Assembly (NCBI GenBank): GCA_973895155.1 | Contig: OZ316897.1 | Location: 7,368,470-7,432,469, forward strand | Direction: 5' to 3' | Length of the DNA: 64,000 nt | Source: Marsupella aquatica | Lineage: Eukaryota; Plantae; Marchantiophyta | Shown: in pieces, positions 6,890 through 64,000 of the stretch | How positions within the stretch are numbered: position 1 is the stretch's first letter | Layout of the letters: the number at the start of each line of letters is the position of its first letter | Made by a program: the position numbers and the translations under genes | Notes under the pieces: model-generated | What the model was told of the DNA's origin: nothing | Databases searched by the model: none | Seen by the model: only the letters and a program-made list of their open reading frames with translations

Positions 6890-6891
6890 AT

Positions 6892-6903
6892 TGGTATAAG
6901 AGC
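6892..6903 (+). promoter_or_regulatory. Primer-binding site, tRNA-iMet type (Copia A)
   Basis: TGGTATAAGAGC, one mismatch to canonical TGGTATCAGAGC, 2 nt after the LTR. Confidence 0.85.
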
Positions 6904-11340: not shown

Positions 11341-11774
11341 GGTTTTGCATTTGCCTCACAAGTTTGGGTTACTTAACATTTGTGTAGATACTAAGATATG
11401 CTCTTGTTCATTCCTTGTATAGGCTATGGCTTAGTTATGGTCTACTCTCGTATAAAGAGGGAAAAACCAGTTTGGTTTTTTTTTCTACAAATTCCCGTTG
11501 AGCAATCATATTGGTAGCAGTCTTTACCCTCCCCTAGACCAGAGTCAAGGAGGAGATTGTTAGAATTTACTCTTAGGTCTAGAGTTACAACTGTATCGTA
11601 GTTAAGGCTAACCTTAATTGCAAACTTGGTTAGGTTAGTCATGTTGTGCACACTCTATAACCAAGCGGTGTTTGCTTGGAGAGTGGGAGCTCAGGCTCAT
11701 TGTTACGGAGCTAGTTGAGAGATAGAGAGAGCTTGCGCTGTAGATGCTTGGTATGGCCGATCGGTCTAGAGTGC

Positions 11775-13022: not shown

Positions 13023-13028
13023 TCTTTT

Positions 13029-13046
13029 TGGCGCCGCTGCCGGGGA
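13029..13046 (+). promoter_or_regulatory. Primer-binding site, tRNA-Asp type (Athila hallmark)
   Basis: TGGCGCCGCTGCCGGGGA, one mismatch to the Athila-type TGGCGCCGTTGCCGGGGA. Confidence 0.85.
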
Positions 13047-14318
13047 ACGAATTTAAGATTGAATTGACGTATAGGCAGTGAATGCCAAAGAGATTGAGAC
13101 GTGAACGAAATCCATGTTCTGCTATCGTGGAAGAGTGTCATCACCAAAGTTAGGAGATGAAGAGCTTCCGCTTAGAGGTGATACCATATTCTATCCAAAA
13201 TGCCCCGGAAACTCTCTTGAGAACTCTGGAGGCATTTGTTGGACCAAACTTAGCGGAAGACACTCTTCTCCCATCAGAGAAGGTGCCGCTAGGTGGAACT
13301 GTTGGTCATCAGATCGCTTCGGAGGGAGTAATAGGAATGGAGGTCACAAAGACACCATAAGTGGCAAGCGAATTTACCATAACATTGCGCGTGACGTATG
13401 GGTGTAAATTGCTGAGTTACTAGGTTTGTGTAGACGATGCCACCTATCCGATCCTTAGGAACATTAAGAATTAAGAATCTGAGGAATCATTATGTTAACT
13501 CTTGGGTTTTGAGCTTGAGAGGTAGAAATGGCATACATTGGTTATCTGTTACCTGGTGGGAAGATGAAAATTTACATTTAGTAATATTGAGGCTGAATGG
13601 TAGGATTACACAGGAGAGATATTTAGTCATTTCCATTCGGGAGTTAGCTGAAGGAATTATGCACTGTGAATTACATGGAAGATTAAGAAGGAGATAGATG
13701 CGTGAGTAGTTGAAGTCCTGGCTTAGCGAGCCACGTAGAGAAGAGATTTCTGCAGATAGGAAACGGCGAATTGGTTTGGACACCCTATTTTTGTGGACGC
13801 TGCCGGAAGAAGGAATTCACAACGGGACGCCGTCAGAAGCATCCGGCTAGATCCAGCCCGTAAGACTCCGAAAGGCGGGACGCTTTTAGAAGCGTCCGCA
13901 CCTAAGACGGGACGATGAGAGAAGCGTCCACTCGCCAGGGGGCGCTTTCAGAAGCATCTGGTGGAATCCGAGATGAACCAACGCGCAAGTCGGGATGCCT
14001 TCAAAGCATCCAGTTTGGGTTGCGACGCTTGTAGTGTGTCTCCCCGCGTCTCAACTGTGAGGACACGCCTGGAGTGACGCGGTCCTAAGATCTCGGCTGA
14101 GCACTAAGGGGAGTACCAGCTGAAGGAGCGAGATAGCAAGGCAAGGAATTATGAAGGGGATGTTGAACGAAGCTGTTGAGGGACGCCTCGAGAATGGAAG
14201 CGGGACGCACCTCCCGAACTAGAGAGACAGCATCGATTCCTAATCTGGGCCAACCACGAATAAGTCCGCTGAGAACGCTTCTTGGCTCTCAGTACCACAC
14301 CTGTTTGGAGGATGAGGT

Positions 14319-16637: not shown

Positions 16638-19600
16638 TAGAAGCTAAGGCACCACTGAAAAATCCAGGTTATAATATTGTGGAAGATGTTAGGAATCATC
16701 CTGCTCGTATCACCATTGGGGAACTATTGCAGGATAACCCAATTTATCGACGGCAACTGAGAGGACTACTAGCAGGAAAACGAAGGAAGAAGAAATTACC
16801 TTCTGTAGATGTACTGCGAACGGAAGGGGAGGACAAAGGACCCATGGAAATTGAGGTCCAAATTCAGGGGTGTGTCATCAGGAGAGTTCCTGTGGATGGG
16901 GGAGCCAGTGTTAATCTGATTACTTAGCCCGTGGCGTTTAATCTGGGGTTCACCAAGTTTGAGCCCACACCAAAAATTTTGCGCATGGCAGATCAGTCTC
17001 GTGTTGTTCCGGTTGGGAAGTTGAGCCAAGTGGAAACTTTGATTGCTAGTGTTCCTTTTCTTTTGGACTATGTGGTCATTAATCCAGAAATACCTTCCAG
17101 CTTCCCTGTTCTGTTGGGCCGGCCTTGGTTATACAAAGCTCAAGTGCAAGTCAATTGGCAATCCCAAGAACTGTCATTTGGGAAGCCTAAGGTGACTGTT
17201 AGTTGGATTCCGGAACCACATTTTGGAGAAACACAAACGGATGATGGGTACACTTCGTATTTTTTGACCTCTTCGCTTGTCTTGCAGCCACTAGAATTCA
17301 AATTTGAGGAAGTTCGTTACTTGGAGGTTTTTCTATCAGACACCCCTATTACCGTGACCAGGCCCTCTTGACAATTAACTTCCACATCGGAATCTTGTTC
17401 AGCAGTAGCCAGCCCTCCTGTTACGAATGTCACTAAAGGCCCTAGCCATGGTATAGGAATGACGTCCACCCCTGGGCCATCTGAACCGGAAATATCCGAA
17501 CTTGAACTTCAGCCGGCAAATCTCATAGATGGAATTGTGGATTCTAAGGCGTGTCAGAAGGTCAAAATTGAGCCAAGAAAGTTTTTGAATATTGGTAAAC
17601 ACATCCAAGGGAAGCTGCGGGAACAGTATATCAGTTTATTGACCCAGTATAAAGATGTCTTCGCTTGGAGTCACTCCGACTTAAAAGGTATCCATCCACA
17701 TTTGGGAGAACATCGCATTGATCTCATGGAAGGAGCAGTATCGGTCCGTCAGAGGCAGTACCGTTTGAACCCCAAGTATTCCATTCTAGTCAAAGAAGAG
17801 CTAGACAAGCTCACCGCTGCTGGATTTATCTATCCGGCCTGAGTAGTGAATGGGTCTCACCAATAGTCATTGTTCCCAAGAAGCCAGGGCCAGATAGTAA
17901 AACGAAAATTTGAGTTTGTCAAGACTTTCAGAAACTGAACGCTGCCACTCGAAAAGATCATTATCCTTTGCCATTTATCGATTTGGTACTTGATTTGGTG
18001 GCTCTTCATGAGCTGTACAGTTTCTTAGATGGGTACTCTGGTTATAACCAGGTGTCCATACAAAAGGAAGACCGTGACAAGACTACGTTCACCACTGACT
18101 GGGGCACGTATGCATTTACCATGATGCCTTTTGGTCTGTGTAATGCCCCGGGTACCTTCTAGCACATTATGATGATTATTTTTCAGGAGTATTTGCGGCA
18201 TTTCATGGAGATTTTTATTGATGACTTCTGTGTTTATGGATTGGCTGCTGAACACATGGTGCATTTAGAAAAGACATTTCGGAAGTGTAGAGAGGCCCAG
18301 CTTTGTCTACACCCAAAAAAGTGTTTCATTGGCATGAAAGAGGGAATCTTGCTAGGCCATGTTATTTCGCAACGCGACATAGAAGTTGATAAGGATAAAG
18401 TTAGGGTGATTGTGGAGTTACAACCACCAGCTGATTTGAAGCAACTTCGTGCTTTCCTGGGGCACGTGGGATACTATCGTCGATTTATTTATAAGCATGC
18501 CGATATTGCTTTTCCCTTAACCCACTTGTTAAAAAACGATGTGGAATATGTGTGGAATGAGGATCGGTAGCAGGCATTCCAGTTGCTCAAAGATCGATTA
18601 ATCTCTGCACCTATTCTGTCACCCCCGGATTGGACTAAGAAGTTTCATGTCTTCATTGATTCTTCTGCCTTCTGTATTGGTGCTAATCTTAGTCAAAAAG
18701 ATCCTGAGAATCAGGATCACCCAATTTATTATGCCAGTCGCGAAATGAGTGCAGCAGAGAAAAATTACTCAGTCACGGAACGTGAAGCTCTTGCTATTGT
18801 GTTTGCTTGCAAGAAGTTTTGGCACTATTTACTGGGGTATCAGATGATATTTCACACTGATCATAATTTCTTGAAGTACTTGGTTAACCAAGTGGATCTC
18901 TCAGGACGAGTAGCACGATGGGTTTTATTACTCCAGGAATTCGATTATGAAGTTCAGGTACAACCTGGCAAGCATCATGAAAATGCCGATTTCTTATCTC
19001 GCTTACCCGGGCCAGAGAATCAGCATAATCTTTCTGATGAATTCCCAGATGAGCATTTGTGGCACATTGAAGGAGAGTCTTCACGGTATTTCGATATTGT
19101 ACACATGTTGATTCATGGTAGTTTTCCTGAAGGCCTTAATGTGGAAGAACGAGCGGTTTTTGCACATAAGGTGGGGCCTTATACTATCATTCATGGCACT
19201 TTGTTTAAACAAGGTCCTGATCAGAGGATGCAACGATGTCTGGAGAACAGGGAACTCCCACAAGTAATTGAAGCTTTACATTCTGGAGAAACAGGTGGCC
19301 ATTATGTTGTCAATACTACTATAAAGAAAATTTTGGATGTTGGGTACTGGTGGCCTACCATGCATAGAGATACTTACAACTTTATTAAGACGTGTGACCC
19401 CTGTCAAAGAATAGGCAAACCCATTGCTAGTTCCAAATGGCCTCTTACGCCCATCCTGCCTTTGGCACCATTTGAGAAATGGGGTATTGATTTTATTGGC
19501 CCAATTTCACCAACAGCTCGGAAAATCCGAAGTAAATACATTATTCTGGCCACTGATTATGCCACCAAATGGGTGGAGGCTAAAGCTACTCGCAAGAATG

Positions 19601-20343
19601 ATGCTACAACAGCGGCTGCCTTTCTCTTTGAGCACATTATTACTCAGTTCGGGTGTCCTTTGGAGTTGGTAAGCGATAGGGGTTTGCATTTTCTTAACTC
19701 AACTATTGAGTTAATTACTGACACATATCTTATCAAGCATCGCAAAACTACTCCTTACAACCCCAGAGCTAATGGCTTAACGGAAAGAGCTAATGGCATT
19801 ATGGGCAAGATCCTGAATAAGATGGTGGAGTCTCACAAGACAGACTGGGATGTGAAGTTACATTCTGCATTATGGGCTTACCGTACTGCCGAGAAAATTA
19901 CAACCCTTCACACTCCCTTCTACGTGACTTATGGCCTGGATAGTATTATTCCTATTGAATTCTCCTTCCCGACAGAACGACTCTTGGTATCCAACCGTCT
20001 CTCTCCAGCGGCTAGTCTCCCACATAGGTTTTCTGATATTGTCAAATTAGAAGAAGTTTGACTTTTAGCGTTAGACCATACAACTACAATTCAGAACAAG
20101 CGTAAGCTTGTTTATGATAAAAAGCTGCGAGTCATGAATTTAGATGTTGGCGATTTAGCATTAGTCTTTGATTCCCGTTATATGTTATTTCCTGGGAAAC
20201 TCCATACCCATTGGATTGGTCCTTATCGAGTTACCCAAATCTGGGCTAACGGTTCGGTGTCCTTGACTACCTTAGACGGTCACCCACTTGACACCCGAAT
20301 CAATGGATTCCGGGTTAAGCGATATCATGAGTCTCCTATTTAG
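16631..20343 (+). pseudogene. Gypsy C pol (PR-RT-RNase H-INT), interrupted by stops and a frameshift
   Basis: PR VPVDGGASVN...LLGRPWL; RT FLDGYSGYNQ, MPFGLCNAP, FIDDF; RH FIDSS, EREALA, TDH; INT HHCC zinc domain, WGIDF, SDRG, NGLTER, C-terminal GPY motif. Confidence 0.95.
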
Positions 20344-20367
20344 TGTTTCACCTGGGACAGGTCGTAG

Positions 20368-20383
20368 TTTAAGTGGAGGGCGG
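20368..20383 (+). promoter_or_regulatory. Internal polypurine tract (PPT1) after pol
   Basis: TTTAAGTGGAGGGC is shared with the terminal PPT at ~23506-23519 next to the 3' LTR. Confidence 0.8.
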
Positions 20384-20562
20384 TAGGTAGTTTGTACTTA
20401 ATTAGAATCAGCATTCCCTCCCCCTTCACAAGTGTTCAGAATTTTAGTTTTTGCACTGGACGTTGCGAGAAGCGTCCACCCTAAAACTTAGTCTTGATGG
20501 GACGATGCGAGAAGCATCCACTTCTAGGCACGGCTAGAGAAGCGTCCTTCACGATTGACGTG

Positions 20563-23445
20563 ATGGTGGAGTCCGAACTTACGACGCGACCAATACTCGC
20601 AATTATCCCGTCGAATATGGTGGACCGCCAACAATTGAGGATGAATCTTGCATTGATGGGCCTGAAGAAATTACTTCGCTTCCCTTGGAGGATGTGCGAG
20701 TTCAGCCTCATCGATCAAGGTGTGTGGGACGCTGAGGAAGGAATCGGTGTCCGCTCGCGTCCAAGTGTTTGGACTGAAGCGCTCATAGCGGGAGTCTACT
20801 CGACACCGACAACGGGCAAGGATTTGCAGAGGATTGATGGAGAGCCCCGAGCTTATATAGAATCTTTCTTTGATCCTGAATCCTTTAAGAGGCGAAATGG
20901 TTGGGTAACCGCGGACTGTTTAGTTACCTCTTTGCAGCATCTTTTTTGATTTCTGTCACCAATTTTCATTCCAGAGAGTCAGACACACATTACCCTTTCT
21001 TTCGTTGCCACCGTTATCTCTTCATTAGAACAGAAGCAGACCATCAATTGGACGAAGATCTTATATAGGGTAATTCATACTCAGGTAAAGAACTTTCGTA
21101 GCAGGTTGCAAGCTGGAAAGTTGAGATTTACCAACTTGACTCCCTATCTAGCTCACATTTATCACAAGCATAAATGTCTGCTCCTCTCAGAGAAAGTCTT
21201 CTATCGTACCCATCGGAGCGCATCTACCTGTGAAGCAAATGAGTTACCGGAAGTACGAGAAGTCCGATCCAGTTCAACACTGGTGGCGTTATGCGAACTC
21301 CTCACTTGCGAAGAATCTGAGCTGGTAAATGAAGTTCGGAGACTGAAAGAGACAAGAGAACCAGTTGGCGGAAAAGACGAGCCAATTCTTTCCCACCCAT
21401 CAGAGGATCAAGATCTCGATCAGGACAATTCTGCTTTTAGAGCGAATGACGAAGACAGGATGGATGTGGATGAAGAAAGCTTACCAGGAGAATCTCCTCA
21501 ACAATATACTACTGCAACGGATGGGTATGATAAAACTTGACAGAACCCTGCTTCACCACCCATGGAAATGAGTAATAATGCTTTAAAAGCTTTACATGAG
21601 TATAATTCGGAAGATTCTCGTAGTCCCTCCCCAAGCCTAGATGTGGTTCCTCTTGTACAACAATCAGTGGAACCTCCGGCGGTATTATGCACGGAGCTCG
21701 TAAAGTTGTTTAAGGCTGATTTAGAGGACAAAATAGTAGATGTAGAAGGAGTAGCTGAACAACCGACCCCACCTAATTTTGTCACGCCATTTCCTATGTG
21801 GCCGACCCCCGAAACTAGGATAACAGTTGCTCTGATTATGTTTGAGGAGTTAGCAGAAGCATTGGCGAGAAAAGGACCTCCTCCACTCCCATCTGTTGAT
21901 TGGGTTTCTCCAGCTTACCTTCTAGAGGAGAGATTGCTTGAGTCTCAACATAGTCAACAAACCACTCCATCTCTCGGGCCTTCAAGCAATTTAGGGCTAC
22001 CTAAGACCAAGAGTGTATCTCCACCCATACCTTTGTCTGGAACACCTGATTTGGCATTTAGCTCTGCATCAGCTTCTATCTTACTAGATTCAAGCAGAGA
22101 TAAGGGTATTCGGATATCACTTGGAGATGAGAGTTCACTTATTACGGAGCAATTTCAAGTAACATATACTCAAAGACCTCGGAAAAGGTTGCGTCGTGTA
22201 AGAAATCAACAGATCTTTCATGAGGCGAATTCACCGGATTTTGAGCAGCTGGAGCCAATCAACACGACAATGGGGAATTTTTCTCCACCTCCTGCATCTT
22301 CGTCTCCTATTGTACTATCATGTTGGCCTACTAGGGAGTTGGTGATACCTTCTTCGAACCCAGACATTATTTTTCGTTGGAAAGGAGCTCCAAGCGATGG
22401 AGAGGAAGATGAAGATCCTCGTATTATCAGAGTACCTCCCAGACTTTGGCACACAGTGGTACTACCATCCCTGATTCCTATACCTAACCTTGCTTCAATT
22501 CATAAGTGGGAGAAGAAAGATTTTCGGATAGATTTTTGGCATTTAGAGATGGAGAGTATATTTGAACAACAGCAGATTTTGGCAAGTACATATCATCCAA
22601 GCATTCGTTCTTTGATTTGTACATATAAACCTAGTAGGGCAGTTTCTCCAATTGACAAGGAGAGACGACATAAGTTTTCGGAGTTTGAAATTTGGTGTTG
22701 GGTGTATATGCTCCGCCGAACTGAAGCCCCTTTTCCGCCAATTGCTCCTGAATTCCTTGGCCATACCAATACTCTGTTTGGGTCTGCCATGAAGGGTATA
22801 TTGTTCCGCATAAGTACGAGAAAGAGCTTGTTAAGCTACGAGAATAGTTGATACGGAATAAGGCTATGAACTCTCTGCTCAAGGGTATAAGTCACTTAGG
22901 AGACTAGTAAGGTTACCTACTCCTCCTTTATGGCCGGACGTTGTCACTCAAGGGTTGTTGAGCAGATAGCAGATTTGTAACCACTTCATGTATAAGATTT
23001 GAAAGGGCGTTTATTCCCTGGAGTATAAACGGATCTGATTGAAGTACTGAGCAACACTTATTCTGTTTGAGTCACCATGTGGACCGTAAAAGCTACTATG
23101 GATTGCTGTGATTCTCTCTCCCGCGCATTTCAGTATTCTCTTTAAGGGGAGATTAAATTGGAAGGACACACTATTCAGCACTTTGTTATTGACCCAGGCT
23201 CTGGAATAAATTTACTATCCCACAGACTGTTTCATCAATTAGTTCGCCAACACGTTTAGCCCATAAGTGCTCAAATCTCAATCGATGGACGATTAATTCA
23301 ACTTTGGGGCAGAGTAGAACAAGTGTCATTACAAATTGGAGAAGAATTTTATGACCTCGATTTTTATATTGTGAACCCCAATGACAGCCATATTCCATCA
23401 ATGGTCTTGAGTACCACTTGGATTCCCAAACCAGAAGATTTTTGA
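20563..23445 (+). pseudogene. Gypsy C extra (post-pol) ORF, ~960 codons in frame +1, with a C-terminal retropepsin-like domain
   Basis: ORF pieces 20494-20949, 21106-21540, 21562-22851 and the 23146-23445 segment are all in frame +1, separated only by in-frame stops. The last segment reads VIDPGSGINLL...DLDFYIVNP...MVLSTTWI. Confidence 0.75.
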
Positions 23446-23521
23446 TGAAGAACCCAGCACTGGTCTTTAATCAAAGCGTGGTTATCTTGTGCGGACACGG
23501 CAAAATTTAAGTGGAGGGCTA

Positions 23522-24770
23522 TGTGGAATGGCGGTCTCTACCATTTGTGTTGGAAGACGGTTTATTTTTGACATTTTTCAAGCATTTGTTCTATTCTGGA
23601 CGCTAAATAGAAGCGACTGCCCTCATCGACCATTTCTCGACCGACGCTTACAGAAGCGTCCGCTCTTACCCGGTGATTTACCCTCGATGCTTTCAGTAGC
23701 GTCGACTATTCCCGAGTACTTTAACTCACGATGCCTTCTAAAAGCGTCCACTCTGACTCGACGCTCAGATGCGTCCATCCACACTTGACGCTTTTAGAAG
23801 CGTCCCTCATTTTCTGATACTTAGATTTAGCTTTCGAAATAGATTACAAATATAGTAGTATTTTCCCGACCTCTAAGTACTTATGCTGTACTTTCCTCAT
23901 ACTTAGTTCAAGTTCAACAGGCATAGCTTTTCATATTTCCTTCATTTTAGGACCTTAACACTTAATAAGACAGAGTAGGATGCTCATTTGAACCAAAGAG
24001 AGAGAGTCATAGATAACACTATATTCAGAATTGGATATTCTGAATAGTTCCTCCTCCTTCCATTATAACAAGGCATGTTGAGAGTGCGTTGTATGGAAGT
24101 AAAGCAGCATTTGTTTGAAGTTGTGATTGAATCTCATAAATTCTTGTGGTAATTGAATTCAGTTACAGACTTCTGAGGATCGTATTGAATTCACTGCTAG
24201 GCTTGCTTGTAGAGTCAAGAATCGCTAGCAAATTCAAGAGTAGTTGTTGATAAATGAGAAGTGAAATTGGATTCTCAGAGTATTCAGTACCGTTGCTTGT
24301 TTCTGGAATATGACTTAGAGTTTGACTGAATTGGGCAATGCTGATGTCAAACCGCGTTGACGGCATTTTAAGGCATATCATTACATTTGCAACCAGAAAG
24401 CTGCTTTGTTTATCAGATTGAGAACTTCATCTCTGTACAATTTTGTATCTTCAGAAGAAAGATTGATGAGTTGAGAGATTTTAGGCATGTTTATATTGAG
24501 ACCAAGTCCTTTCTGAAGGTGTGGCAATAATTTACTAGAGTCTCGGAGACTGGAATCATTTCCTTTCTAGTCTGTAAATCTGAAGTTAAGTTACTTTTAT
24601 ATTTTGTTTACTTTATTTTGTTGAGAAGTAAGAAAAGTGTAGAGCTGTGAGTTCTACATCACTCAAAATGATGAAAATTATTCAATTCATACCAAAATAC
24701 GTTCTTTAAGGGATCAGAACCTCGGTTTTAAGTGAGAAATTACACTTTTAATACTTATTGCTATACGACA
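23522..24770 (+). repeat. Gypsy C 3' LTR
   Basis: Preceded by PPT AAGTGGAGGG; matches the 5' LTR; followed by TSD AGTGC. Confidence 0.97.
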
Positions 24771-24903
24771 AGTGCAGTAAAGCTCATATGTGTTCCCGTG
24801 GATGTAGCCTCATGTGGAGGTGAACCACATATCTCTCTGTGTTGACTCTTGTGCGTTGGATGGTTCATGGGCTTGCCATTGCGATTGTCGTCTATACTCA
24901 ACA

Positions 24904-25547
24904 ACTTAGTTTCATGTGGTTGTCATTCATGATGTTGTGTCTATTTCTTGTGTTCAATGTGTTATACTTCTAAAGTGATGATGAATGTGAGTGTTTATAT
25001 GTATTGCAATGTGGAGTGTTCATGAATTGACAATCTCTCTTTATGAACTGTTACACAATTCTTACCTTCCATTATTGGATTAGTCATGGTCGGGGTCATG
25101 GTTGCAACTTCCCCACATTCCATCTAAATTGTATTATTTATAAACATGACTATGTATGGACCCAAATAGTTGTGTTGTGAGACCCGGACCACAGACTATC
25201 GTGGTCTATTATGTGACACTATATAGTCACATGTTAGTCGTTGTTAACAAGGTTTACTTCTAAGTGCAACTAAGTCATGAACATGACTTACCTTGTGACT
25301 AATTAAAGTCATATTATAGTCACATAGCAACAAGGCTAGACTCCATGATGGAGTCATGGACCAGTCACAAATGGGTATCAAGAGAGTCACAAACTTGTGT
25401 ATCAATAGTGACTTCTATTTTTTGGTCTCAACTTTTGCAACTCCAAAGGTCACAGCTTGGGTCACATCACGTTGAGTCACAATGAAGTCACATGAGCCAA
25501 AAGGAGTCACATATTGCGGTCTTAGATTACTTTGGATTCTTCTAGTG
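24904..25547 (+). mobile_element. 3' end of CACTA element with subterminal repeats and TIR
   Basis: Ends GGATTCTTCTAGTG (reverse complement CACTAGAAGAATCC) at 25547; dense GTCAC/GTGAC/GTCATG repeats at 25080-25520; Gypsy B coding sequence starts abruptly at 25548. Confidence 0.85.
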
Positions 25548-28500
25548 ATGGTTTCCTCCCATCAAAACCTCTTGGCTCTCTGTAGAACCTTGTCACGCTC
25601 CTTGGCATCAATACTGCCAACAATAGAACCACTGCGCAAATTTTCCAACATTTGCACATCATTGTGAATATCTTGTTATCTAGAAGTTACCTCACCAACA
25701 TCCACATCAATCTGAAGACTCATCATCCACTCCATCCAATGAGGTAGAGTCCACAGATCCACTGTATGCTAGCACCCAACAAAGAAAGACAGATGCATGC
25801 CATCCTGGCACCATCTCCTTATCTGACTCATCATGCCATCTAGCTCTAGCCTCATCCTGCTGACTAGTACATGGGTTGCGACTCAACCCATCTGCATCCA
25901 AGTTCACATCTCCAAGTCTATGTACAACCTAGAAATCATACTCCTGCAACAACAATGCCCATCTTGCAAGCTTCCCAGTAAGCTTGTCAGACTCCATTAA
26001 CCACTTGAGAGGCTGATGATCAGTGATCAAAGTAAAAGGATTACCAAACAAGTAATAGTGGAAGTGTGTCACAGCCCACACTGCTGCCAAACACTCTCCC
26101 TCATAAGAGCTATACTTAGCCTCTGTTGAATTGTTTGATCTACTGACATATGCCACAACAAACTCATGCCCTTTGTCATCCTTCTGAGTCAGCACTGCTC
26201 CAAGTCCTACTCCACTCCAATTAGTGTGTAGCTGAAATGGTCTGCCTGAAATGGGTCTTCTCAAAATAGGGGATGATGCCAACCTTTGCTTCAAATTTTG
26301 AAAGGCATGCTCCTGGTCATCACCCCAAGTCCATTCCTGATCCAACTTAGTGAGTATGGTTCAAGGTTTAGCAAGTGGCGAAATCCTTTATCATACCTCC
26401 TGTAGTAGCTCGCCAATCCCAAGAATGCACAAACTTTTCTCACATCAATAGGATGAGAAATCTGTGTAATGGCCTCCACTTTACTAGTAAGTCTACTATA
26501 CACCCAATCCCCTTGGGTATATAGTGTGGCCCAAATACTCAATTTGGTCTTGGAAGAACTGACACTTGCCAAGATGGAGCTTCAACCCATGTGCTCTCAA
26601 TCTCTCCAACACAATCTACAAGTGATGTTGATGTTCTTCCACAGTAGAAGAATAGACCAAAATATCATCAATATAACATCTGACAAAATCCAAACTTGCG
26701 AGGATTCAATCCATGACTCTTTGGAACTTAGCTGGTGCATTCTTCAACCCAAATGGTAAGAGCAACCACTGATACAAACAATCTTTGCCATAAGAATCCA
26801 TCCCCCAGAATGTTGTCTTGGACCTGTCAGCATGCCTAATTGGAAGCTGATGGTACCCTGCTCTCAGATCCAATGAATTGAAAACCTTTGCATACCCCAC
26901 AACATCAAAGATCTCCTCAGGTGTGCACATAGCATATCAATCAGATTTTTTTTGGCAATTAATAGGTCTGTAATCACCACACATGCGCCTATCTGTGTAA
27001 TTTCTATGCACATCCTTCTTGGCTGGCATCACTATGGCAGATGCATACTCCCCATATGAAATCTCCACCAATCCAGCCTCCAACAAATCTTGAGTTCTAC
27101 TTTGAATCAAAGCTCTCTCCATGTCACTATAACAATATGGTCTACGAAAGATTGGCGCATCACTAGCCAATTCAATCTGAATACCAAGGCCTTTCAATGT
27201 CCCACATCCTTCATGCTAAATGCAAAACAATTCCAATAACTCTTCAAGAATCAATGCATGCGATGTCTCTCATCCCCTGTCAACTTAGGACCAATTTGTG
27301 ACTCCCAACTCTCCACCAGATCCCTAATATCTTTTTGTAGGGTAGAAGAGATAGTCGATGATTGCTATTTAGCAGTCTCTTCCTGCTCAACAATCTGTCC
27401 AACCTTGGCCAATCTTGCCATAGGTCCATGGACTGTCTGCTCACCCCCAATTGTGGTCATCACTATCTTAGTGGACCGCAAGCTCACCAATGGGCGATGA
27501 GTAACACCAGCAGAGTGCATCCGCAACTGTTCAGCTACTCCCAAGCTGATAATCCAAGTCAAGCAATTCAAATCCATTGCTTGACCAAGGACCTGGTGGC
27601 GTGAACTCTCTAACACCGAGGCAACTATAGTGGTGCTTGTCAAAAATCCCATAGCACGCTCCCTCTCATCAGTAGTAGGTTCCACTAATTGTTGAAGAGT
27701 TGTGTCCCACACAAGTCCAAGGCCACTTGCTTTGAATGCATATGAAGCAGAGTGGCTCACAAGAGTGGGTAATGCACAACGTAGGCGCCCAACTACATTG
27801 ACCACTGCCAATGGAGGTCTATCAGGTTCGGTCACACCCTGTGCACGATGCCCTAGATCCAAAATATCATCCACCACGAAGGCTGTTGAGCATGGATGAT
27901 GTCCAATGCATGCTTCAGCACCTCACATGGGATCAAATTAGTCCACCAGAAGCGTGGACGATGTGCACGAGAACCCACATGTGCAACATCCAATAACACA
28001 ACATCTCCAATCCAAGACCTCACCTGGTGAACACTGGCAACAATTTGACGACAATCATCACCTAACAATGGCACATTCTCCAAAATGTATGCTGGAGACT
28101 GTGTCTGATGTAGTTGGAGATGACGCAACACCCGTAACATCTCCCAAAACAATGCAGAGTGTGGATCATGAAGTCCATGCCCAATGCCAACTCTAGATTG
28201 GCCCCGACATGACCAACCAACACCAAATCAATGGGGCCAACACAATGCAAATGATCCACCCCCAACAATGAAATATCAGCAGGTAGTGCATACTGATATC
28301 CATGAACAACATCTACTAACAGCAACTGTGGATATGTATCCACCAACATAGCCACATAACGCAATGAGACCCTCCGTGCTATCTCATCTGTCTCCACATA
28401 CAAATAACGACGCACAAGAATTCCTGCCTAAAGAACAACAACCAATCTAGTGTTAATCCCACCAAATGATCCAACAAACAAATACCATCCAGTGGATACT

Positions 28501-31500
28501 GCCAAGCGATAGGAGTGGTATCCAATGGTGAAAGAGTCACCGGCCCATCTGCAAGAGACTACTTTGCTCCTGATTGTGGTGTAAAAGTATGATGCCATGC
28601 GCCATGTACCAATCGTGCTGCTGCCTATGGCAAGGCCTGTCCAGTGCCCCACACTGGTGGCGCCACACTGCCAATAGGTAATCCCTATAGGATCTGCTCC
28701 TCATGTGACTCCTCCAATGGTGGAACATATGTTGCATGCACATTACCCTCAATCAAATCATCAGGTCCAGTAATCACACCACTGAATGTTGCCAAAGACA
28801 AGTGTGGATTTAGGGCCTCCCATAGGTCGACTAAATTGCATTGGCAACCTGCTCAATCGAGCATCTCCTGACTACCAACCAGGTCTATATGACACTGATT
28901 CATCCCAAAAATCAAGAATAAATCACATGGGGTAGAGCACTGTACATCCCACCAACACATCATATGACTCTGCCTTAGTCAAAATAGCTCGCGCTTGTAT
29001 CTGTGAGCTATCTGTCATATGACCTTCTTGAATCGTTAAATCAAGTGGTCTCCTGGTGATATGCTGTGTAGATGTAGGTCCCCCCAATGAAGTTTGAATG
29101 GGAAAGGGACACTCCTCCAAATCATTTGGACGCAATCCCAATCCTTGTATCGCAGACTTGCCCAACATCAAGGGCTGAGCACCAATATCTAGTAACACTC
29201 TCTCTAGCTGGTATACTGCTCCAGAAGGCCCAACTAATTGGAAGATACCACTCCGATTATCCAATGACACAACACTAGGTTTAAACCTAGTCCTTTCAAA
29301 TGCAGGGTGTGCTGGTAAATACACCAACCTCGCTACTGTTGCATGCCATGTCTCACTAGTAGCAGTAGGTGGCATGGTCTTCATTGCTTCAACACTACAA
29401 GCTGCTTTTGCATGGGAAGCAACAACTGGAGTGTCCTCATAGAGTGTAGCTACCAATCTAAACACTTATGCAGGACCAATTCCCAAGTTCAACATGTTTG
29501 CCGCTAAAAATAATGGGTGCGCACTATGGCAGTAACCGCCCCCAATAGGGTACTTGTCATCCCTGCTGCATCACTACCTGATTTTGCCAACTTACCCCCA
29601 CTAGGGTTTGTCCGAACCGGGTTCATAGAGGCAGTCTGCAATGTCTTTGACAATCTATGTGAAAGACTGGGGAAGCTTTGTTAGACGATGAGCATCCCCT
29701 CTCTGAGGATCCAACTCCACAACGGCTCCTCTAGGTTCAAGAGCTTTTGCTGCTCCCCGTGTCAAAGTTGCTGATGCATCAATGTGTGCAGTGCCACACA
29801 TAAATCCCATGGTGGCAAGGTCTCCATTAGCTCCATAAGATGTGGAAGGACCATGGGATGTAGATGCCCCATCACCAGAAGTAGGTCTCACTTGGGAACT
29901 AGCCATGGCAGCTAGCTATTGCTCCAATTGAGCAATTTTAGCATCCTTTGGATCTATGATTACAATAGGGGCAGCGTTACCTCCCTGTCTTCCTGCATGT
30001 GGCATGCCATGGCCATGTCCACCACCTCTACCTCCTTCTTCTCTTCATGTGTACGGGATCCTCCCCTCCGTAACTCAGGGTGGAGTGAGAAACACCTATC
30101 CTTGGTGTGTCCAAGAGCTCCACAATCATCACAATGTTATTGATCAGGCGCTGATGCTCTCCCTGATCCTCTATGATCTGGGCAATATCTTTGTGCATGA
30201 TCCCCACCATAGGTCCAACATCCTGACTGCTGTCTAGCATAAGAGGGCACAGGTCTTTGGCTGGTAGACTCTCGTGCAGTGGGCTTCTCCCTCTGGCTCT
30301 TTTGTGCAGTAGGTTGTGGTGTGGATGTACATGTAGCCGTTGGCGCTTTCTGGGTAAATCCAAAAGTCACCACCTTCTCATTCACCATATTGAGTTCAAT
30401 GTACTCAGAAAGTGCAAAAACAACTGCCAATGTAGAATCTGAATCCCTAAGTAGAGTGACATCCCTCACTCTACGCCACAACTCCCTATCCAAAATGGCA
30501 TACCAAAACTGGACTGCCTGGGCCTCTGTCACTCTCTTCATGATGTTAATCAATCTCCTCATATGGGTGTATGCCTCATGTAGACTCTCTCCAGTCTTAC
30601 GCTGAAACTTCTACAAACCCTTCAACTTATCTGTTCTCACACCCTGGTAGTTCTGGCGCAATACCTCAAAGAACTCCACCATAGGGTTAAATGCTGGCAT
30701 AGCTGTAGCTCTTGACACTACAGCACCAGTAGTAGTGGAAGTGGATGCTGCTAAGGTGCTAGTCTAACTAGTGCTGCTAGGGGAAGCAGCAACAGTAGCA
30801 GCAATAGCAACAACAAGAGCAGCAGAAGTAGCAACAGGTTGGGCACTTGTACTTGTGCCATAGGTGATGGATACATAATTGGATGACCAATGTTGTCTCC
30901 ATGCCTCAATGTCCAGCAAATGAGCCTTCCAAAACTCATGGTAATCATCCATGGGTGGTCCCTCCAAATGCTGAAATAATCCCTTCCATGCCATGAAGGG
31001 TGTGAACAACATGGCATTATGTAATGTCTGCAGGTCGCACCGCGTATCAAACTCCTAGATGAAATCATCTAAGTCAATGGTGCCAACTGTACCAAAGAAT
31101 CTCCTTAGGCCCTTTGTGGCCCCATACATCTTCTCCATATGCCACAGCAACGGCGCAACCACCTGGTGATGAGGAGAACTGGTAACAGAATCTTTGTTTG
31201 AATCACTATCTGAAATAGCATTGCTGACTGCTACCAAAGCTGTTGGCCAAAACTGCGCCCCACTCTGAGTGAAACCGGTCCATCGTCCATCGGGTAACCC
31301 ATCAGCACCAAAAGAATCCGTGGTGACCAACCTAACCTAATCTATGTGCTAACCCTAAGGGCAATCTGTCCCTATCAGCACCACAAGCACTCACCATGGT
31401 GTGTTGGGCATCACTCCAATCATCAGGAGAGAAATACGCAGCACAACTAGAATGTTCGGTTTCAAATCCGGATCACTCCTATGGAATCAAGCGCCCACAC

Positions 31501-31970: not shown

Positions 31971-32729
31971 ACCAACAAGCTGGCCCGCCGCTCCTGCTCC
32001 ACCCTCACGCCTCTCGTCCCAAGTTTCCTCAAAACTCCGAGATGAGCTAAGAGTGAGCCCTTCACGCCCGCAACGATTTGCTACGCCGGATTGAGTTTCA
32101 GATTCGACAACGTTCAAACTTTGCCTCTCGGTTTCCCTTCACAATCATAGCTTACTACATACACTCTGTGCGCGGTAGTCGTAGTCATAGCATTGTCGAC
32201 TGCAATCAATCCGCACTGTCGGCAACGCATAAATGGCAACAAGCATGAGACGTTCCTTCACAAAAATGCGATAGTCAACCGAGCCAACATTCGCCGTCCG
32301 ACTCCTTCACGGAAATATCAATCCGCACTGTCGGCAGTGAGTTCAACTTTGCAGCTTCTAAGACAATCTATAATCCTTGGTAGCCAGTAATCAGCCGGTG
32401 ATTTCTACTCCTTGGCAGCTTTTTCAATTCAAAATTCAAAATATCCACAGATTGAAGAGCTCTTGTTGAAATTGTTTGGAGTGAGAGGTATGAAGTGAGA
32501 AGCAGATACATTGAACTCATGGAAGCTATATCTCGAGGTATATGCAAGCCAGGGAATTTTGCAGGGTGAGTACAGGAGCAGGTGGGTGACTACCAGGAGC
32601 TTAGCAGACACATTGCATAAACAAAGACATCACAATTTAAAGACAGGTATATCTAGTAACGTTTTGTCTCATTCAAAAGTGAAAGGTTGGGACTTCAGGT
32701 CCCCAAGAGCCAGAAAGTTTTTGGCTCTT

Positions 32730-32842
32730 GCCCTTAAATGTCCTCAATCATTGTCGTGAGGACTGCCTCAGGAGGGGGTTGAGGCATGTATGTCCCTTGC
32801 CCTTGAAAGTCCTCAATTGTTGTCGTGAGGACTGCCTCAGGA
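32730..32842. repeat. Short direct duplication (~45 bp x2, GTCCTCAAT..TGTCGTGAGGACTGCCTCAGG)
   Basis: Two similar copies about 69 nt apart; each contains a GTCCTCA/TGAGGAC inverted pair. Confidence 0.6.
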
Positions 32843-35800
32843 CCTGGTTGAGGCATAAAAATATTGGTCAGTCCAAAGGTGCTATAACTTCACGTAAAGA
32901 CTTTAATTTGTGATTTTCATCTTTGTATTTTACAGGGCTCCCTTCTTTTGAGGAGGGGATTGTGGGATCTACTAAATTGTATGAGATAAAATAGTTTACC
33001 ATCTAAGTTCCTATTTTTCTCAGGACCTTTTACATGCAAGACTGCCCTAAAGTAACTTTTCCTTGAATAGTCTTTGGGTTTCAAGGTAAAGAAACCAACA
33101 ATTTTGCACTTGGCCAGTGTTTTGCTTCTACATGTTAATTTTCAACAGCTTCACTTTAGCAGCATATTTCAAACTGCAAAAGAACAAGAGGCACCCAAAC
33201 CGAGACCCGAACGTGAGACATAATCCCACAAGCAATAGACCCAATCAAAGGGAGGACACCAAAGAACCAACCAAGGAAAAAGAGCAAACTCTATCTTCCC
33301 AATAACAAAGGCAAGGGCATTCTGTTGGAAAACTAGTGCAACAAGGGATAGGGTAGACAAAGAGCTCTGGACAAAGTATTGCAACCAATCATCAAAATCA
33401 AACATTCTGCATACAGGTATGGAAGAGAATGTCAGAAGTTCAACCTTGTTTGCTGAAGATGGAGATATATATAGAACAAATGACGAGATGGGATAGAAGC
33501 AAGATGGATGACTATTTCAAAGTAACACGAAAGGCAGTTGCCTGCATAATGCACCTTTTGAATACAAGAATCCCCATCTATGTGTCCACCATCATTAGTT
33601 TTTTACTTGGAGGGGTCACTTTGGCAGAAGTGACACATCATGTGCAACAAAATCTACGCCCACTTAAAAAATCCAGGGTACTACGTCCACTCATCCAGTC
33701 AAACTACACAAGACAACATCAATCTGGTGTAGGACATTCCATCTGGATCAATCTTAAGCAAAGCTTGGTCACCACCTCTGCTACTGAAGTAGCCTTCTGC
33801 AGGTATGTAAATAATCTCCTACAACAATAGTTAACTTTGGTTCATCTTTCAATTGTCGCAAATAGGACATTTTGGCTGAAACAAACTGCACCGATGCACA
33901 AGCTGGAGCACTTATTGACAAAATGTCACCAATCTAATGTCAGTGATGAAAGTAGATCTAGTTGTGATCACAAATCTATGATTGGAAGCATAGACTGTAG
34001 ATTGACACAAAACTGAAAGACATGTGGTTTCAATTAATTTTCCACTACCATTTTGTCAGTCCAGATGCTGAGGCAATACATATCAAATTCAAGATGTTTA
34101 AAGAGTCTATCTAGTAAGTACATCATGCTTACCTGACCCTTCATTTGTGGAGCAGGGGAGAGAGACTATACAACAAATCACAGCTATACAACAAATTATG
34201 CGATGGATACATTGAGGAGCCAATTTAAGTCCATCCACTTCTGGTAATTGGTAATCCCAAAGATTGAGTGTGCCATTTTCATACGTGGGAGAAAAATCCA
34301 TCCTATGAAAACAATCTGAATACCCTCAAACTCACAACTCTTTAGGTGTTTGGAAAATGAAATTGCAACACAGGTTTTAGGAGGCAAAAAGAAGGAGGGA
34401 CACATTTAATTAATCCGCAGATATGTCAAAACATACTTGGGCCAGAATCAATTAACAGGCAGAGTTTCCAGGAGCCGTTCATTCCCTCGTTCAATTCATG
34501 CATCCAAAAAGGGGCCTGCGGTTTCATGACATCATGACAATCTCAGAATTAGTGTCATCCACTCCAACACTGAAAGGTCTCCCATGATACGGATTGCATC
34601 TGATGGAAACATCTGACAGATATATACGTGACGACTAGAGAGATATACTTGATGGACCCCCAAAATGATAAGTGTTATTTGACAAATTCTACGACTGATC
34701 CAGACCCTTCATGGACCTTAGATCAACCTACTGAAAACCTCATGGGGATCAAGTATCTCTTGAGACAACCACTTGAAACATATCAGGAACAAATTGTTGT
34801 GACAGAGTACCCTAAACTTTATTTTTGGCTATTCTAGCTGAAGACAACAATATTCTTCCCTGCACATTGGCCAATTGAAATTCACTTCTACACTATCAAG
34901 TTCCTAACTGGAAGTCATAAGTGCATGTTAAAGACAAGGGACTGTTGCATGCTAAATAGTTTTTATCTTGGTTAGTTTTGGTTAGAAGTGTGGGATTCTG
35001 AAGAAAAAACTCGCCAAGTAATCATTTTGCCTGAAAAGTACAGGCCCCCCCAACTTCTACTCTGCTGCTTCAGTTTACAAGATGAGGACTGGCTCAAGTT
35101 CAATGCCCAATGGTGCCCCTCTTGCAATGGGTTTGGTTGAATATTTTAAGTTAGTTTATAAATGTGGTTTAGCAAACCTCTCAGGAAGGTTTCAGTGTAA
35201 ACCTTTCCATAACTCAAGGTGGTTGTAAACATATACAACCCACTGGCTCTTGTTGACAGCCGGAAATCTATGTACCTAAACCCCTCCTGTTGTTTTCTGT
35301 TTGAACTTCTATGGATGACTATGAGCCATAACACCCATGCTAGAGTAGCTTGAGGGTTATGAGATTCTTGTACCCCCCACCCCACTATTCCAATTTCAGG
35401 CACAATTTTCAGGTCAAATAGAATACAAAATTACACTCAGAGATTATGTTATCAACCCATGGCCACTCCAAGGCCATGTTGCAAACCCATCGAGCTTGCT
35501 GCCCTTGCCACTCCAGGGCCATGGTTCTAACCCCCTCAGGCTCATGGGCCTTGGGGATTATAAATAGGAATATGCAGGTCTGGTTTGGGGTTACTATCTC
35601 CAACCCTGTGACCAGAAAATGAAGAAAAGAAAATATTCTGAGCTTTCATGGAGCAAGATTCGGGCTAGAACCCTTGCCCAGACATACATACATCTACAAC
35701 TATAATAACTGATCCTGCCTTTTCTTGTCCTTCATCCTGTTATGAAACCCATCCAGAATCAAGGGGAATCAAAACTGGCCTTTAGATATTTTAGGGTATT

Positions 35801-59729: not shown

Positions 59730-62700
59730 TTATTGATCTAATTCGATCATTCTCGGTAGAAGTCCCACTTTTAACCCTAGGGGAGAGCCCCCGTCCCCAG
59801 AAGTCACCGTCAACTTCCTCTCCACACCCATCACCTTCACGACGGCATCTGGGTAAAGCAAACCTTTCTCAGCCAGCCCTGACATAGCCCTCATCAGAAC
59901 ATTGTCAACCCAACCCTGAAATAAATCTCGATTGGAAAAATTCTCCCAGGCAAAAGATACCATCACCTCCAAAAGTGTTGTGTCAATCTCCACTGGAAAA
60001 TTCACGGCTTGCACTACATGCTCCAGAGCAATCTCGAGCCTTTCCAACACCCAATCTGTGAGGTCCTTCAGATTGAAAGGCTTGAAAACCACGGCTGCAT
60101 CCAACAGGGTACACATCTCTGCTGGACATTCGCCCCGAGCACATTCTATCACCTTGGCTGTAAGCTCTTCCAAACTTTCCGGCACTGATGTTGCACAGAG
60201 TTCTTCAGTGATACATGGTTCCTCATCCTCAGACAAGTTCTCGTCAGCAGAAAGATTTAAATCAAGAGAGAAGGCTCTGCCGGGCGAGCTTTCTTCTCTC
60301 TTGCATAACTTACGGGGAGGTGATCTTGAACCACGTGACAGCACATCTTGTGTAATCGAATCGGTTCTCCGTTTGAACATTGGTGAACCGAAGAGCAGGA
60401 TGCTTTCTGGAGGCGTCTCCGCTTTGAGAGACTTCTGAGGCTGCTGTGTCTTCATGGAATCCACAATCGACAAGACTATTCCCCTCGAGTGCAACACATT
60501 TTCGCTAGCTGTGTTATCTACAAACAATCTAACCTCAAGGGGGCCAAGTTCAGACAGCTTCTCTTCATCAAACTCAACACCGCTCCGTCCTTGACGGTTT
60601 CGGGGGCTACTCAACAAACTCGCACCAGCACCACAAGTCATGATGACTATGACATTCGCAAGACTTACCTCCCTACCAATGGAATCTGCCAGTCTCCCTC
60701 GCTCCATTGCCTTGATGAGATTCTTCCTCAAAATGGAATCTGCACAGTTAATATCTTCCAGCAGCACCACCGAGAATGGCTTGCGACGCAAAGCCTCCGC
60801 CAACCTGTCGAGAGGGCTTTTGCCTCTGAGGCTCACGCCGTTGCTATCAGCTGCTAGGATTTCTGTGCTTGGTGGGGTTCGGCCGGAAGCATCAGTCTGC
60901 CACCCTGTCACCAGAATTAAGTGTTCTTCGCGACCGAAGACAAGTTTAGCGAGAGCCTTGGCCACCTCTCGCTTCCCCACGCGGTCTGGACCCAAGAACA
61001 TGAGCCAGGAGTCAGTTCTGGCGTATGCACCTGTCTTACGCCCCTCCCCGGAGCGGCACTTCATTATAGTTGCTGCCACAGCTCCCACAGCCTCCTTCTG
61101 CCATGAAACTGCATTGCTTAGAGTCCAACACAGCCCATTCAGATTCTCTGTATCAGACGACCGCATCACACCCAAGTGGGGTGACATTTTTAAGGCCTTG
61201 GGATTAGTATTCGGCTGCTGCAATTTGCAGTGAAGAGGATGTTGACCTTCTTCCCTAAGATCTCTTGTCGGTGCAACAGGCCCAAGACTTGCGCGACCCA
61301 GTGCGAGATCAGTCCCCACTGAGGCATCTTGATGACCTGACTTTCCAACCAAAATATTCGGCTTCTTGCTTAGAAGAGGCCCACTGCCAGGATCTCTCCT
61401 CATCCAGCTCAACGGTGAACCACCGGACTCAACTCCACTCTTAATTTCTGATTCCCCATTCTCAGAACCAATAGACGCCTTGGAGCTGGTTAAGAAATTC
61501 GGCATGTTCCCTCTCGCAATCCTTGCATGAAGTGGTGCCAAATCCAGTAACTTTTCATTCGATATTTTCAACGATTGAGGGGTCCACTTCGACGGAACCG
61601 GGCCAGAAAGCATGGGGAGACTCATTCGAGCGTTCTTCTCATGAGGCGAGACAATCTCTGCAACAGGACTCGCAGAGTGGTCTCGCGAGACTGTAGGCGT
61701 GAAACCTCCTTGATGCACATGGTGTGCAAAACAATGTTTCTGCCACTTCTGGCGAAGCTCTTCTATTCTTTGTGAGATCAGGTTCTCCTCCTCCTTAACC
61801 TGCACAAGTTTCATAGAGAGCTTTAAGTGATTTGTACCAGAAACTTTCGTACCGAAACGACACGCCACGTTCCCCATCGTGACAATTGGCTGTACCATGG
61901 GCGTCATTCGCTCAGTTCCACGCTTGTGAGTGCCTTGGGAAACTCATGCGTGGAAACAATCACAATTATCCTGTAGGTTCGCTAGTAGTAGGTCCTAAAA
62001 GAAATACTTCAAACGAAACAATGACATCATAACTTACCGGAAGTGTGGCACGGCACTTGTCGTTGGGATTTTGGATCCAGGGGAGCTTGGAATAACCGGC
62101 AGGACCAGCTAGAGGTTGCCCAGACCCCACACACAGAGTCTGCCCTTCCTTCATCAGGATCAAACACTCCTGTTGTAGTTTACTGTTGCAGTCGGGACAG
62201 CAATCGTGCTTCTTTAGTCTATTTTGAATCGGGCCCAACTTCAAGCCGCCTGTCTGACTTAAGAAGGAAATATCCGCATTCATGATGTTGTAGTGGCTGC
62301 CGAGTCTACGTTGATATGCGTCAGCACACATGCCCACCATACACATATTAGAGAAACTATGACATTTCAAGCTAACGAAAGCATATCAGGGGGTCCTGAT
62401 GTACATAGCCTTGCGGTTCGAAGGACAACAAATGGATCCATCCAAACGGAAGTATCCGAATCTACATAATTAGCATACAGGAATGCTACAACGTTCTTGC
62501 GGAACGTCGACCTTACAGACAGCTGGCCGGTTGGTCGCAGGAATACCGCGTCCTTCTACTTGATCTGGTTGAGACAGCGCTCAACGGAAAGTAACACATA
62601 AATAGTAAATAGTCCGAGAGCTTCGCAGAGACGATATCAAGGGTTCTAGCCTTCCATCTCGAATCGACGCAAAACTAGAGGCGCTCTCCGTAAGAGCAGA

Positions 62701-64000
62701 GTAAAACCTGAAGCGGAATGGCTATGGTACAAGCGGGGGACAGAGAGAGCAAGACAAACTGTAATGATCGGACGTCTGCTGTATCCTCCAATGACCCCCA
62801 CGCCATGGACGCACAAAACTGTAGAGGGAGCATGCTTGGGAAAATGAGACAGAGAGTGTGAACCAACCTGGGCTGGATTCCAGAACCGGGACTGTCTGGG
62901 GTCAGGAGAACGGGATGGAGTCCCAAACTGTCCAGCAGAATGTGCTTATTAGCTCGCCAGCGTTCCATCGTCTTGGGGGAAACAGAAGCCAGCAACCAAA
63001 GACGATTGTGCTCGTTCAAGTTCAGCAGCTGCTGCAGCTCCTGGAGTAAACGACACGCCATACTATGAGAAGGGTCAAGCAGCCACTGCAAGTCCCCCAC
63101 CGATAGGATGGCACCTCCGGTTAGCATACACCCATCCACGTCCCGCTTCAGCTTTGCTAGCTTCTGCTCGAAAACCTCCTGACTCAAGATTCCCACAGAA
63201 AGAGACGTGAACGGCAGATCGAGACGCTGAACCCCACGTAAGGATCGAAACTCTCCTCTCGCCAGCCGCTGAGACAACTCCTTCAGTACTAAATTAGGCC
63301 CCGACTCACTGACTATAACAGCGTTCCTCTTCTTAGGGCCAGCGACGAATGTCTCTACAATGTTGCGTATGTCTGCGTCGTGAAGATGGGTCAAAGTGGA
63401 TCGACCAAGCATCCGAGAGGCCTGCTCTGGTCTATTCTGATCAAAATGGGATGGTAAGTTAAGCGGGGCCGTGGCAAAGTAGGGGCTTTCCGTCTCAACG
63501 AGCACATCCCTACCATTGCTAGCGCCGCTCATTCTTCCTCTGTCCAGCAACTTCACATGATTCATGGACGGGTCACCTGCTGAGAATGGGCCAGGAAAGA
63601 TAGAGTTTCGGAATTGTACACTGCTGAAATGGGCATTCGAGAGTTGCATACGCCTCAGGCCAGAATTGTCAAAAGTAGGAGGACCAACAGGACCCGCAAT
63701 TGCAGCTTTGGCCACTGCCTCCTCCATAATGTTCTTCACAGCTGTGCTCGAAAAGCCTGCCTCCCGAAACACTCGGCTCACGCTCGGATCATCCAAAATG
63801 GAAATGGTGAGATGGGCGATCCCAGTCTTCACAGCCAGTAGAGGTTGTAAGCTCTGCTCTGGGGTGCCTCTCCGTTCATTGGCATGAGCTCGCTTCAGAG
63901 CCGCGCCAAGAGCATTGTTCATGGCTTGATCCTTGCTTTTCTCCGGATCAGTGGTCATCGGCAACCTGTCTAAAGCCACTTTGAAGCACAAACCTAAGGC
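59730..64000 (-). CDS. SMXL: SMAX1-like / D53-like protein (class I Clp ATPase-related repressor), 5' end outside the window
   Basis: Exons >64000-62868, 62305-62038, 61799-59730 (GT-AG, in frame). Clp-N motifs CF.VALDRLP, NAL.AALKRAHA..RRG, ISILDDPSVSRVFREAGFSS; CCPDC; D2 FLGPDRVGK; RGKS; EAR motif LDLNL. Confidence 0.95.

Follow-up and report, generated by a model that had tools for sequence, protein, structure and literature searches.

A 64,000-nucleotide stretch of DNA from the leafy liverwort Marsupella aquatica (contig OZ316897.1, positions 7,368,470 to 7,432,469, hereafter the window) contains on its minus strand the decayed remains of an element resembling Ty3/Gypsy retrotransposons, with a cytosine methyltransferase (DNMT) domain embedded in its coding region. 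The methyltransferase is of the C5 type, is complete and unpermuted over 27,515-28,534, and lies between a retropepsin and a reverse transcriptase/RNase H region (Table 1). These parts share one strand, with the protease (PR) upstream of the DNMT and the reverse transcriptase (RT) and RNase H (RH) downstream of it. The order gag, PR, RT, RH in the window matches that of Ty3/Gypsy elements; the integrase (INT) has been lost. A preliminary description of this DNA, made from the letters alone, had placed the DNMT between PR and RT on the same strand, and this placement is borne out by matches to known domains and to related elements.

Table 1. Features of the element and of its host neighbourhood in the window
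Feature	Position	Strand	Evidence or remark
gag-like region	30047..31327	(-)	tblastn with gag segments of the Sphagnum element L002, 42-61% identity
Retropepsin (protease)	28920..29783	(-)	55% identity to Sphagnum; Pfam Asp_protease_2 weak
Protease-DNMT linker	28535..28919	(-)	in-frame stops at 28559-28561, 28625-28627 and 28685-28687
DNMT3-like C5 cytosine methyltransferase domain	27515..28534	(-)	motifs I-X in canonical order
Poorly conserved, variable C-terminal tail beyond motif X	27368..27514	(-)	ends at the TAG at 27365-27367
DNMT/RT boundary: in-frame TAG (27365-27367) followed by CAA TCA	27359..27367	(-)	fits UAG-CARYYA
Reverse transcriptase and RNase H, in several frames	25710..27313	(-)	Pfam RVT_1 6.8e-9 and RT_RNaseH 6.6e-37; 66% identity to Sphagnum
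RNase H-integrase linker remnant; end of the copy	25535..25711	(-)	integrase and PHD finger missing
Host SMAX1/SMXL-like gene	59730..63991	(-)	NBD_SMAX1 and AAA_2 domains

The coding strings of the DNMT are distributed over three frames on the minus strand of 27,300-28,800, and all the motif strings that had earlier been read there by joining across frameshifts could be located. Motif I is itself divided by a frameshift near 28467, so that '...PLDGICLLD' stands in one frame and 'FGGINT...' in another, as had been proposed. Three stop-free pieces of the window are colinear along positions 39-341 of a family profile built in this analysis from 230 related DNMT domains: piece 28065-28427 corresponds to profile positions 39-106 (E 5e-10), piece 27856-28227 to positions 106-215 (E 4e-43) and piece 27368-27922 to positions 215-341 (E 6e-48). 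Because a frameshift cuts motif I, the remaining piece (28431-28700), read in its own frame, matched no relatives. Motifs I, II, IV, VI, VIII, IX and X are all present in the canonical, unpermuted order, and the window retains the catalytic Cys, ENV, AHRPR..W.N, ERERAMGF and LGQAMD. Motif IV reads SCR as opposed to PCQ (Pro to Ser, Gln to Arg); both the retained Cys and the decay of its neighbours had been noted before. The span first given to the domain, 27550-28500, lies inside it; the domain proper is somewhat larger (27515-28534) and is followed by a tail that runs to the TAG codon.

Relatives of these pieces are numerous. Piece 27368-27922 has 84 related proteins at 46-66% identity (best E 4e-44), with Calypogeia fissa, Sphagnum troendelagicum and Marchantia polymorpha among the species represented; one of the 84 is annotated at source as a C-5 cytosine methylase. 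For piece 27856-28227 there are 411 representative relatives among 1.84 billion proteins. No further DNMT copies were found in the 64-kb window, and a protein atlas search returned generic DNA_methylase clusters only.

Among solved enzymes the domain is closest to the DNMT3 class. When a profile of 66 domains was compared with all solved chains, the best matches were DNMT3A (E 1.2e-24), DNMT3B (2e-22) and DNMT3C (9e-22), followed by plant DRM (2e-14 to 8e-12), HhaI (1e-10) and DNMT2 (1e-6); DNMT1 and CMT gave no match. The predicted structure of an uninterrupted Calypogeia domain (L005:7599-8666), with a mean predicted local distance difference test score (pLDDT) of 92, points to the same class, as the top 50 Foldseek matches are all DNMT3A, DNMT3B or DNMT3C, with target-normalised template modelling (TM) scores of 0.80-0.84. 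The catalytic domain of animal DNMT3A/3B/3C is thus the nearest solved relative by both profile (1e-24 to 1e-21) and fold, and it shares with the element enzyme the colinear motifs and a similar wording of motifs VIII and X (AHR.R..W.NL; LG...). It differs in that identity is only about 20%, in that the element domain has neither PWWP nor ADD and is flanked by protease and RT, and in that many members of the element family carry ECQ rather than PCQ. DRM, a plant enzyme akin to DNMT3 that ranks second among the solved matches (2e-14), is circularly permuted, with motifs VI-X before I-V. Such an order was encountered neither in the window nor in the family, both of which are colinear with DNMT3A; the N-terminal motifs of the element, whose order is canonical, align to the C-terminal half of DRM, and the DRM match has the shifted register that its permutation predicts. 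The earlier assignment of the domain as DNMT3-like and unpermuted, unlike DRM, therefore agrees with the profile and fold searches against solved structures. Of 207 family sequences 204 retain the catalytic Cys, and of 237 the Glu of ENV is present in 223. Conservation reaches at least 90% for each of the following: the catalytic Cys, ENV, the motif VIII arginines, the S-adenosylmethionine (SAM)-binding motif I and motifs VIII, IX and X.

The same order of domains on one strand, gag-PR-DNMT-RT-RH(-INT-PHD), occurs in Calypogeia (loci L001 and L005), in Sphagnum (L002) and in a metagenome contig (L006). L006 holds an uninterrupted open reading frame (ORF) of 1322 amino acids for gag-PR-DNMT and one of 1035 amino acids for RT-RH-INT-PHD, and a further metagenome protein, P0103, is a single uninterrupted polyprotein of 2188 amino acids with zf-CCHC, protease, DNA_methylase, RVT_1, RNase H and integrase domains. 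A Marchantia locus (L004) is decayed, with pieces of the DNMT, the DNMT-RT junction and the start of RT remaining. Intact relatives carry a PHD finger beyond the integrase. The preliminary description had called for a search for complete gag-PR-DNMT-RT-RH-INT copies in other non-seed plants, and had considered that sister elements might lack the domain. The layout does recur in Calypogeia and Sphagnum and is uninterrupted in P0103, and the relatives in Calypogeia, Sphagnum and L006, far from lacking the DNMT, carry it at the same position. Among the best 150 of the 411 representatives of piece 27856-28227, 46 relatives are at least 600 amino acids long and 43 of these have retroelement domains. 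Thus, the domain of the window falls among element-borne enzymes and not among host DNMT3 genes.

Two layouts are found in the wider family. The first, PR-DNMT-RT-RH-INT, is that of bryophytes, several Closterium species and metagenomes. The second, RT-RH-DNMT-INT-PHD, is represented by Scenedesmus 'pol' proteins and many metagenome proteins; its RT, RH and INT are of the Gypsy type, it ends in a PHD tail and its DNMT is related (34-41% identity, e.g., Scenedesmus P0206), but the DNMT sits between RNase H and integrase. Carriers of the second layout are P0105, P0141, P0144, P0206 and about 60 other proteins. In L006, a Joint Genome Institute (JGI) metagenome contig, two elements of the family stand head to tail (2-4090 and 6342-8952), separated by some 2.2 kb of non-coding sequence; the pair may be a true tandem, a split-repeat structure or a product of assembling a multi-copy element. 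In Mesostigma viride, four gene models of differing lengths (P0100 and P0249-P0251) fall into one 90% cluster and have a C-terminal DNMT domain of this family, with no retroelement domain detected in them. Such genes may exist in many copies, in which case they could be element-borne as well.

From the same 81 elements, one maximum-likelihood tree was computed for the DNMT domain and one for RT-RNase H, each by a quick search and with support from the Shimodaira-Hasegawa-like approximate likelihood ratio test (SH-aLRT) only; the row for the window was assembled from pieces aligned one by one, leaving gaps and no letters at the breaks. The two trees are congruent. In each, the window belongs to a clade of five whose other members are two Calypogeia elements, Sphagnum and L006 (support 100), and in both a single branch parts the two layouts (support 99 for DNMT and 94 for RT). 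Between Sphagnum L002 and L006 the ratio of nonsynonymous to synonymous substitution rates (dN/dS) is 0.13 for DNMT and 0.11 for RT, figures that are rough since dS is about 1, near saturation. These values show the DNMT to be under purifying selection about as strong as that acting on RT. The two have diverged together. The DNMT-bearing Gypsy elements are an old, selected lineage in liverworts and mosses, and the DNMT of the window belongs to an element-borne clade with those of Calypogeia, Sphagnum and Marchantia and, more distantly, Closterium. The view taken earlier, that the domain marks a lineage rather than an accident, is upheld by the shared layout, the congruent trees and the purifying selection.

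The copy in the window is dead and capable of none of the steps proposed below. Its DNMT is broken by frameshifts near 28467, 28212-28221 and 27895, and an in-frame TAG at 28428-28430 lies inside the domain at a position where relatives have Gln. Three more stops, all in frame, fall in the protease-DNMT linker (Table 1). The active site of the protease reads LLDIGA in the window versus LLDSGA in relatives (DSG to DIG), the zinc knuckle of gag is without its second Cys (CWTYGG..H....C) and the RT is broken over several frames. Near 25535 the copy stops within the RNase H-integrase linker, and as no integrase follows it must be regarded as 3′-truncated. The inactivity that had been stated at the outset is therefore evident from the three frameshifts, the in-frame stops, SCR, DIG and the missing integrase.

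Other copies of the family are abundant in the same organism. When contigs from four public sequencing runs were aligned to 27,200-28,900 of the window, thousands of short contigs matched at 90-99% identity, and thus the family has many diverged copies in M. aquatica, although contig depths give no copy number. At two of the frameshift sites (28,467 and 27,895) other copies have a one-letter difference in length, and at 28561 and 28627, in two of the stop codons, they differ from the window. Those frameshifts and stops therefore occur only in this copy or in copies closely akin to it. Compared with the other copies in run X1, the window carries A/T against G/C at 55 places and G/C against A/T at 20. 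Such a lopsided spectrum is what decay through deamination of methylated cytosines would give; it provides no dated age.

The boundary between DNMT and RT is marked by an in-frame TAG-CAA-YCN in six of six loci, namely the window and five loci of the bryophyte clade, and the amino-acid tails on either side of the TAG vary freely. Leaky stops of the tobacco-mosaic-virus type have the sequence UAG-CAR-YYA (PMC3542737). The DNMT had been described as built into one polyprotein with RT. It does lie between PR and RT, but in the bryophyte clade the conserved TAG interrupts the frame, and its leaky context assigns the DNMT to the Gag-PR side. In such an element Gag-PR-DNMT would be the main translation product, and RT-RH-INT-PHD would depend on read-through of the TAG. 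The protease would release the DNMT, which would be produced in Gag-like amounts, far above those of RT or integrase, because it is encoded before the leaky TAG. The freed enzyme would methylate the newly made DNA of the element or DNA near it. For elements of this kind, de Mendoza et al. prefer self-methylation of new element DNA (PMC5890265). Action of the DNMT on the complementary DNA (cDNA) of the element itself is put forward here tentatively, with less than even odds. A broader scheme is somewhat doubtful, in which an ancient streptophyte Gypsy lineage, predating land plants and shared with Closterium, would place a working DNMT3-type writer of 5-methylcytosine on the Gag side through a leaky stop, in capsid-like amounts, and a PHD reader on the integrase, would methylate its own cDNA or landing site and would shape the methylomes of bryophytes.

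As to the stretch itself, it is very probably the DNMT domain of a dead, 3′-truncated Ty3/Gypsy-type copy, from a lineage that carries a DNMT3-type enzyme between protease and RT. Several points weigh against this reading and against the function proposed for the enzyme. Of the four pieces into which the domain is split in the window, only 27856-28227 matches PF00145, and weakly, at 19.6 bits (E 6.8e-4), which is below the gathering cut-off of 22; the Pfam search that had been suggested is thus passed not by the window but by its close relatives P0103, P0003 and P0038, at 36-46 bits. Against solved structures the same piece on its own finds DNMT3A chains only, at E 0.11. Since the window piece is weak alone in both searches, the assignment leans on its relatives. 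In the family alignment (profile column 108) the residue before the catalytic Cys is mostly E (123) versus P (75); the bryophyte clade has Pro at this position. The paired trees that the preliminary description had asked for, congruent as they are over 81 elements, are unrooted and contain no Klebsormidium, host plant DNMT3 or DRM sequences. Around 25.5-31.4 kb there is no terminal repeat pair, and the 3′ part of the copy is missing; split, DIRS-like repeats have been described for this kind of element (PMC5890265). Read-through of the TAG is suggested by its context only. Finally, the Klebsormidium domain produced no methylation in yeast, a result that its authors regard as inconclusive because human DNMT3B failed too (PMC5890265).

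If the enzyme is active, its target might be other than the cDNA of the element. It is rather unlikely that the DNMT works in trans, on chromatin of the host or at the insertion site, perhaps together with the PHD finger, for example by burying new insertions in heterochromatin or by mimicking host marks. Such a role would suit both the PHD finger that follows the integrase in intact relatives and the excess over integrase expected of a Gag-side DNMT. However, the DNMT and the PHD finger would sit on separate cleavage products, and the copy in the window has lost its integrase end. Less credible still is that the domain persists because of a function that needs no catalysis or has a substrate other than DNA; it might bind nucleic acids, methylate RNA or take a DNMT3L-like part in assembly. 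The yeast result for the Klebsormidium domain and the predominance of ECQ over the canonical PCQ in the family could be read in this way, but the same experiment failed with human DNMT3B, the catalytic Cys, ENV, the motif VIII arginines and the SAM-binding motif I are conserved at the level given above, and the fold matches the catalytically active DNMT3A/B. The origin of the domain leaves less room for doubt. In favour of a processed copy of a host DNMT3 gene that landed in a Gypsy element by chance stand the intronless, DNMT3-like nature of the domain and the lack of a visible target-site duplication. This explanation is rejected, as the position and the junction codons are identical in loci of four species and the long relatives are nearly all retroelement polyproteins; the congruent DNMT and RT trees, the dN/dS of 0.13 and the conserved motifs rule out a one-off event. 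Chance resemblance or a chimeric assembly, which the low Pfam score of the window might have suggested, is likewise rejected in view of the matches of 4e-43 and 6e-48 to the family profile, the same layout in independent assemblies of other species and the coverage of the stretch by contigs from four runs.

The product of the SMAX1-like gene is 74% identical to that of the leafy liverwort Calypogeia fissa, 37% to that of Riccia and 33-34% to those of Sphagnum. The genome is thus that of a leafy liverwort akin to Calypogeia, in agreement with the land-plant host proposed earlier. A separate long terminal repeat (LTR) retrotransposon adjoins the DNMT element on the plus strand (11775-24770). Its 1.25-kb LTRs are 97% alike (11775-13022 and 23522-24770); they are the sole strong repeat pair that the search for LTRs of the DNMT element brought up, and they belong to this neighbour. 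It encodes a zinc-knuckle gag (14319-16637), RT-integrase (17899-20130) and a 429-amino-acid ORF after pol (21562-22851) with no Pfam match, and it is inserted in a repeat of about 340 bp (flanks 11558-11770 and 24771-24904), of which the window has an uninterrupted copy at 6547-6890 and a third copy at 55432-55744. An ORF at 50437-51138 on the plus strand has a copia-type gag domain (Retrotran_gag_2, E 6.6e-16), and the window therefore holds another retroelement. About 1.4 kb upstream of the gag region of the DNMT element, on the strand of that element, 32727-32856 is a two-copy tandem repeat of 69 bp with a short palindrome (GTCCTCA...TGAGGAC) in each unit; scans for tandem and inverted repeats in the leader (31-35 kb) found nothing beyond it.

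DNMT3-like enzymes have been reported in retrotransposons before. KnitGypsy-Dnmt3 is the DNMT3 of a Gypsy-type element in the charophyte Klebsormidium nitens (de Mendoza et al. 2018, PMC5890265). Like it, the family described here has an intronless, unpermuted DNMT3-like domain within a Gypsy coding region, with conserved key residues, many copies, silent and decayed ones among them, and a low substitution ratio (Ka/Ks < 0.2 in PMC5890265 versus 0.13 here). The present host, in contrast, is an embryophyte, a leafy liverwort, with relatives of the element in Marchantia, Calypogeia and Sphagnum. The text of PMC5890265, through which the two were compared by description only, mentions neither a leaky stop between DNMT and RT nor a PHD finger, and no Klebsormidium protein is among the named matches to the DNMT family. 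SymbioDIRS-Dnmt3 of Symbiodinium is a retrotransposon-borne DNMT3-like enzyme with de novo CG methylation activity in yeast (PMC5890265). It differs in its carrier, a DIRS element that encodes a tyrosine recombinase and resides in a dinoflagellate, and is regarded by the authors as an independent capture (PMC5890265). Later papers from the same group cite Gypsy-DNMT3 as occurring in 'streptophytes' and add no new hosts, and a survey of plant DNMT3s (Yaari et al.) does not mention element-borne copies. In the literature searched, outside which subscription journals lie, no Gypsy-DNMT3 is reported from an embryophyte, the only host being K. nitens, which is consistent with the preliminary statement that no embryophyte family had been characterised. 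Gypsy-DNMT3 in embryophytes is thus a new host range for a known kind of element. New details may lie in the leaky stop between DNMT and RT, in the PHD tail and in the second layout.

Plants defend themselves against transposons chiefly by methylating cytosines. It is therefore paradoxical for a transposon to encode a de novo methyltransferase, and the paradox is on record from a single charophyte alga and from dinoflagellates alone. The copy in the window itself adds nothing functional; its value is that of a pointer to the family. Through it, Gypsy-DNMT3 elements are found in embryophytes in many copies, under selection and with the layout Gag-PR-DNMT / leaky TAG / RT-RH-INT-PHD. Some of the DNMT3 genes counted in the genomes of bryophytes and algae may be transposon copies, and the paradox becomes testable in tractable bryophytes such as Marchantia and moss systems.

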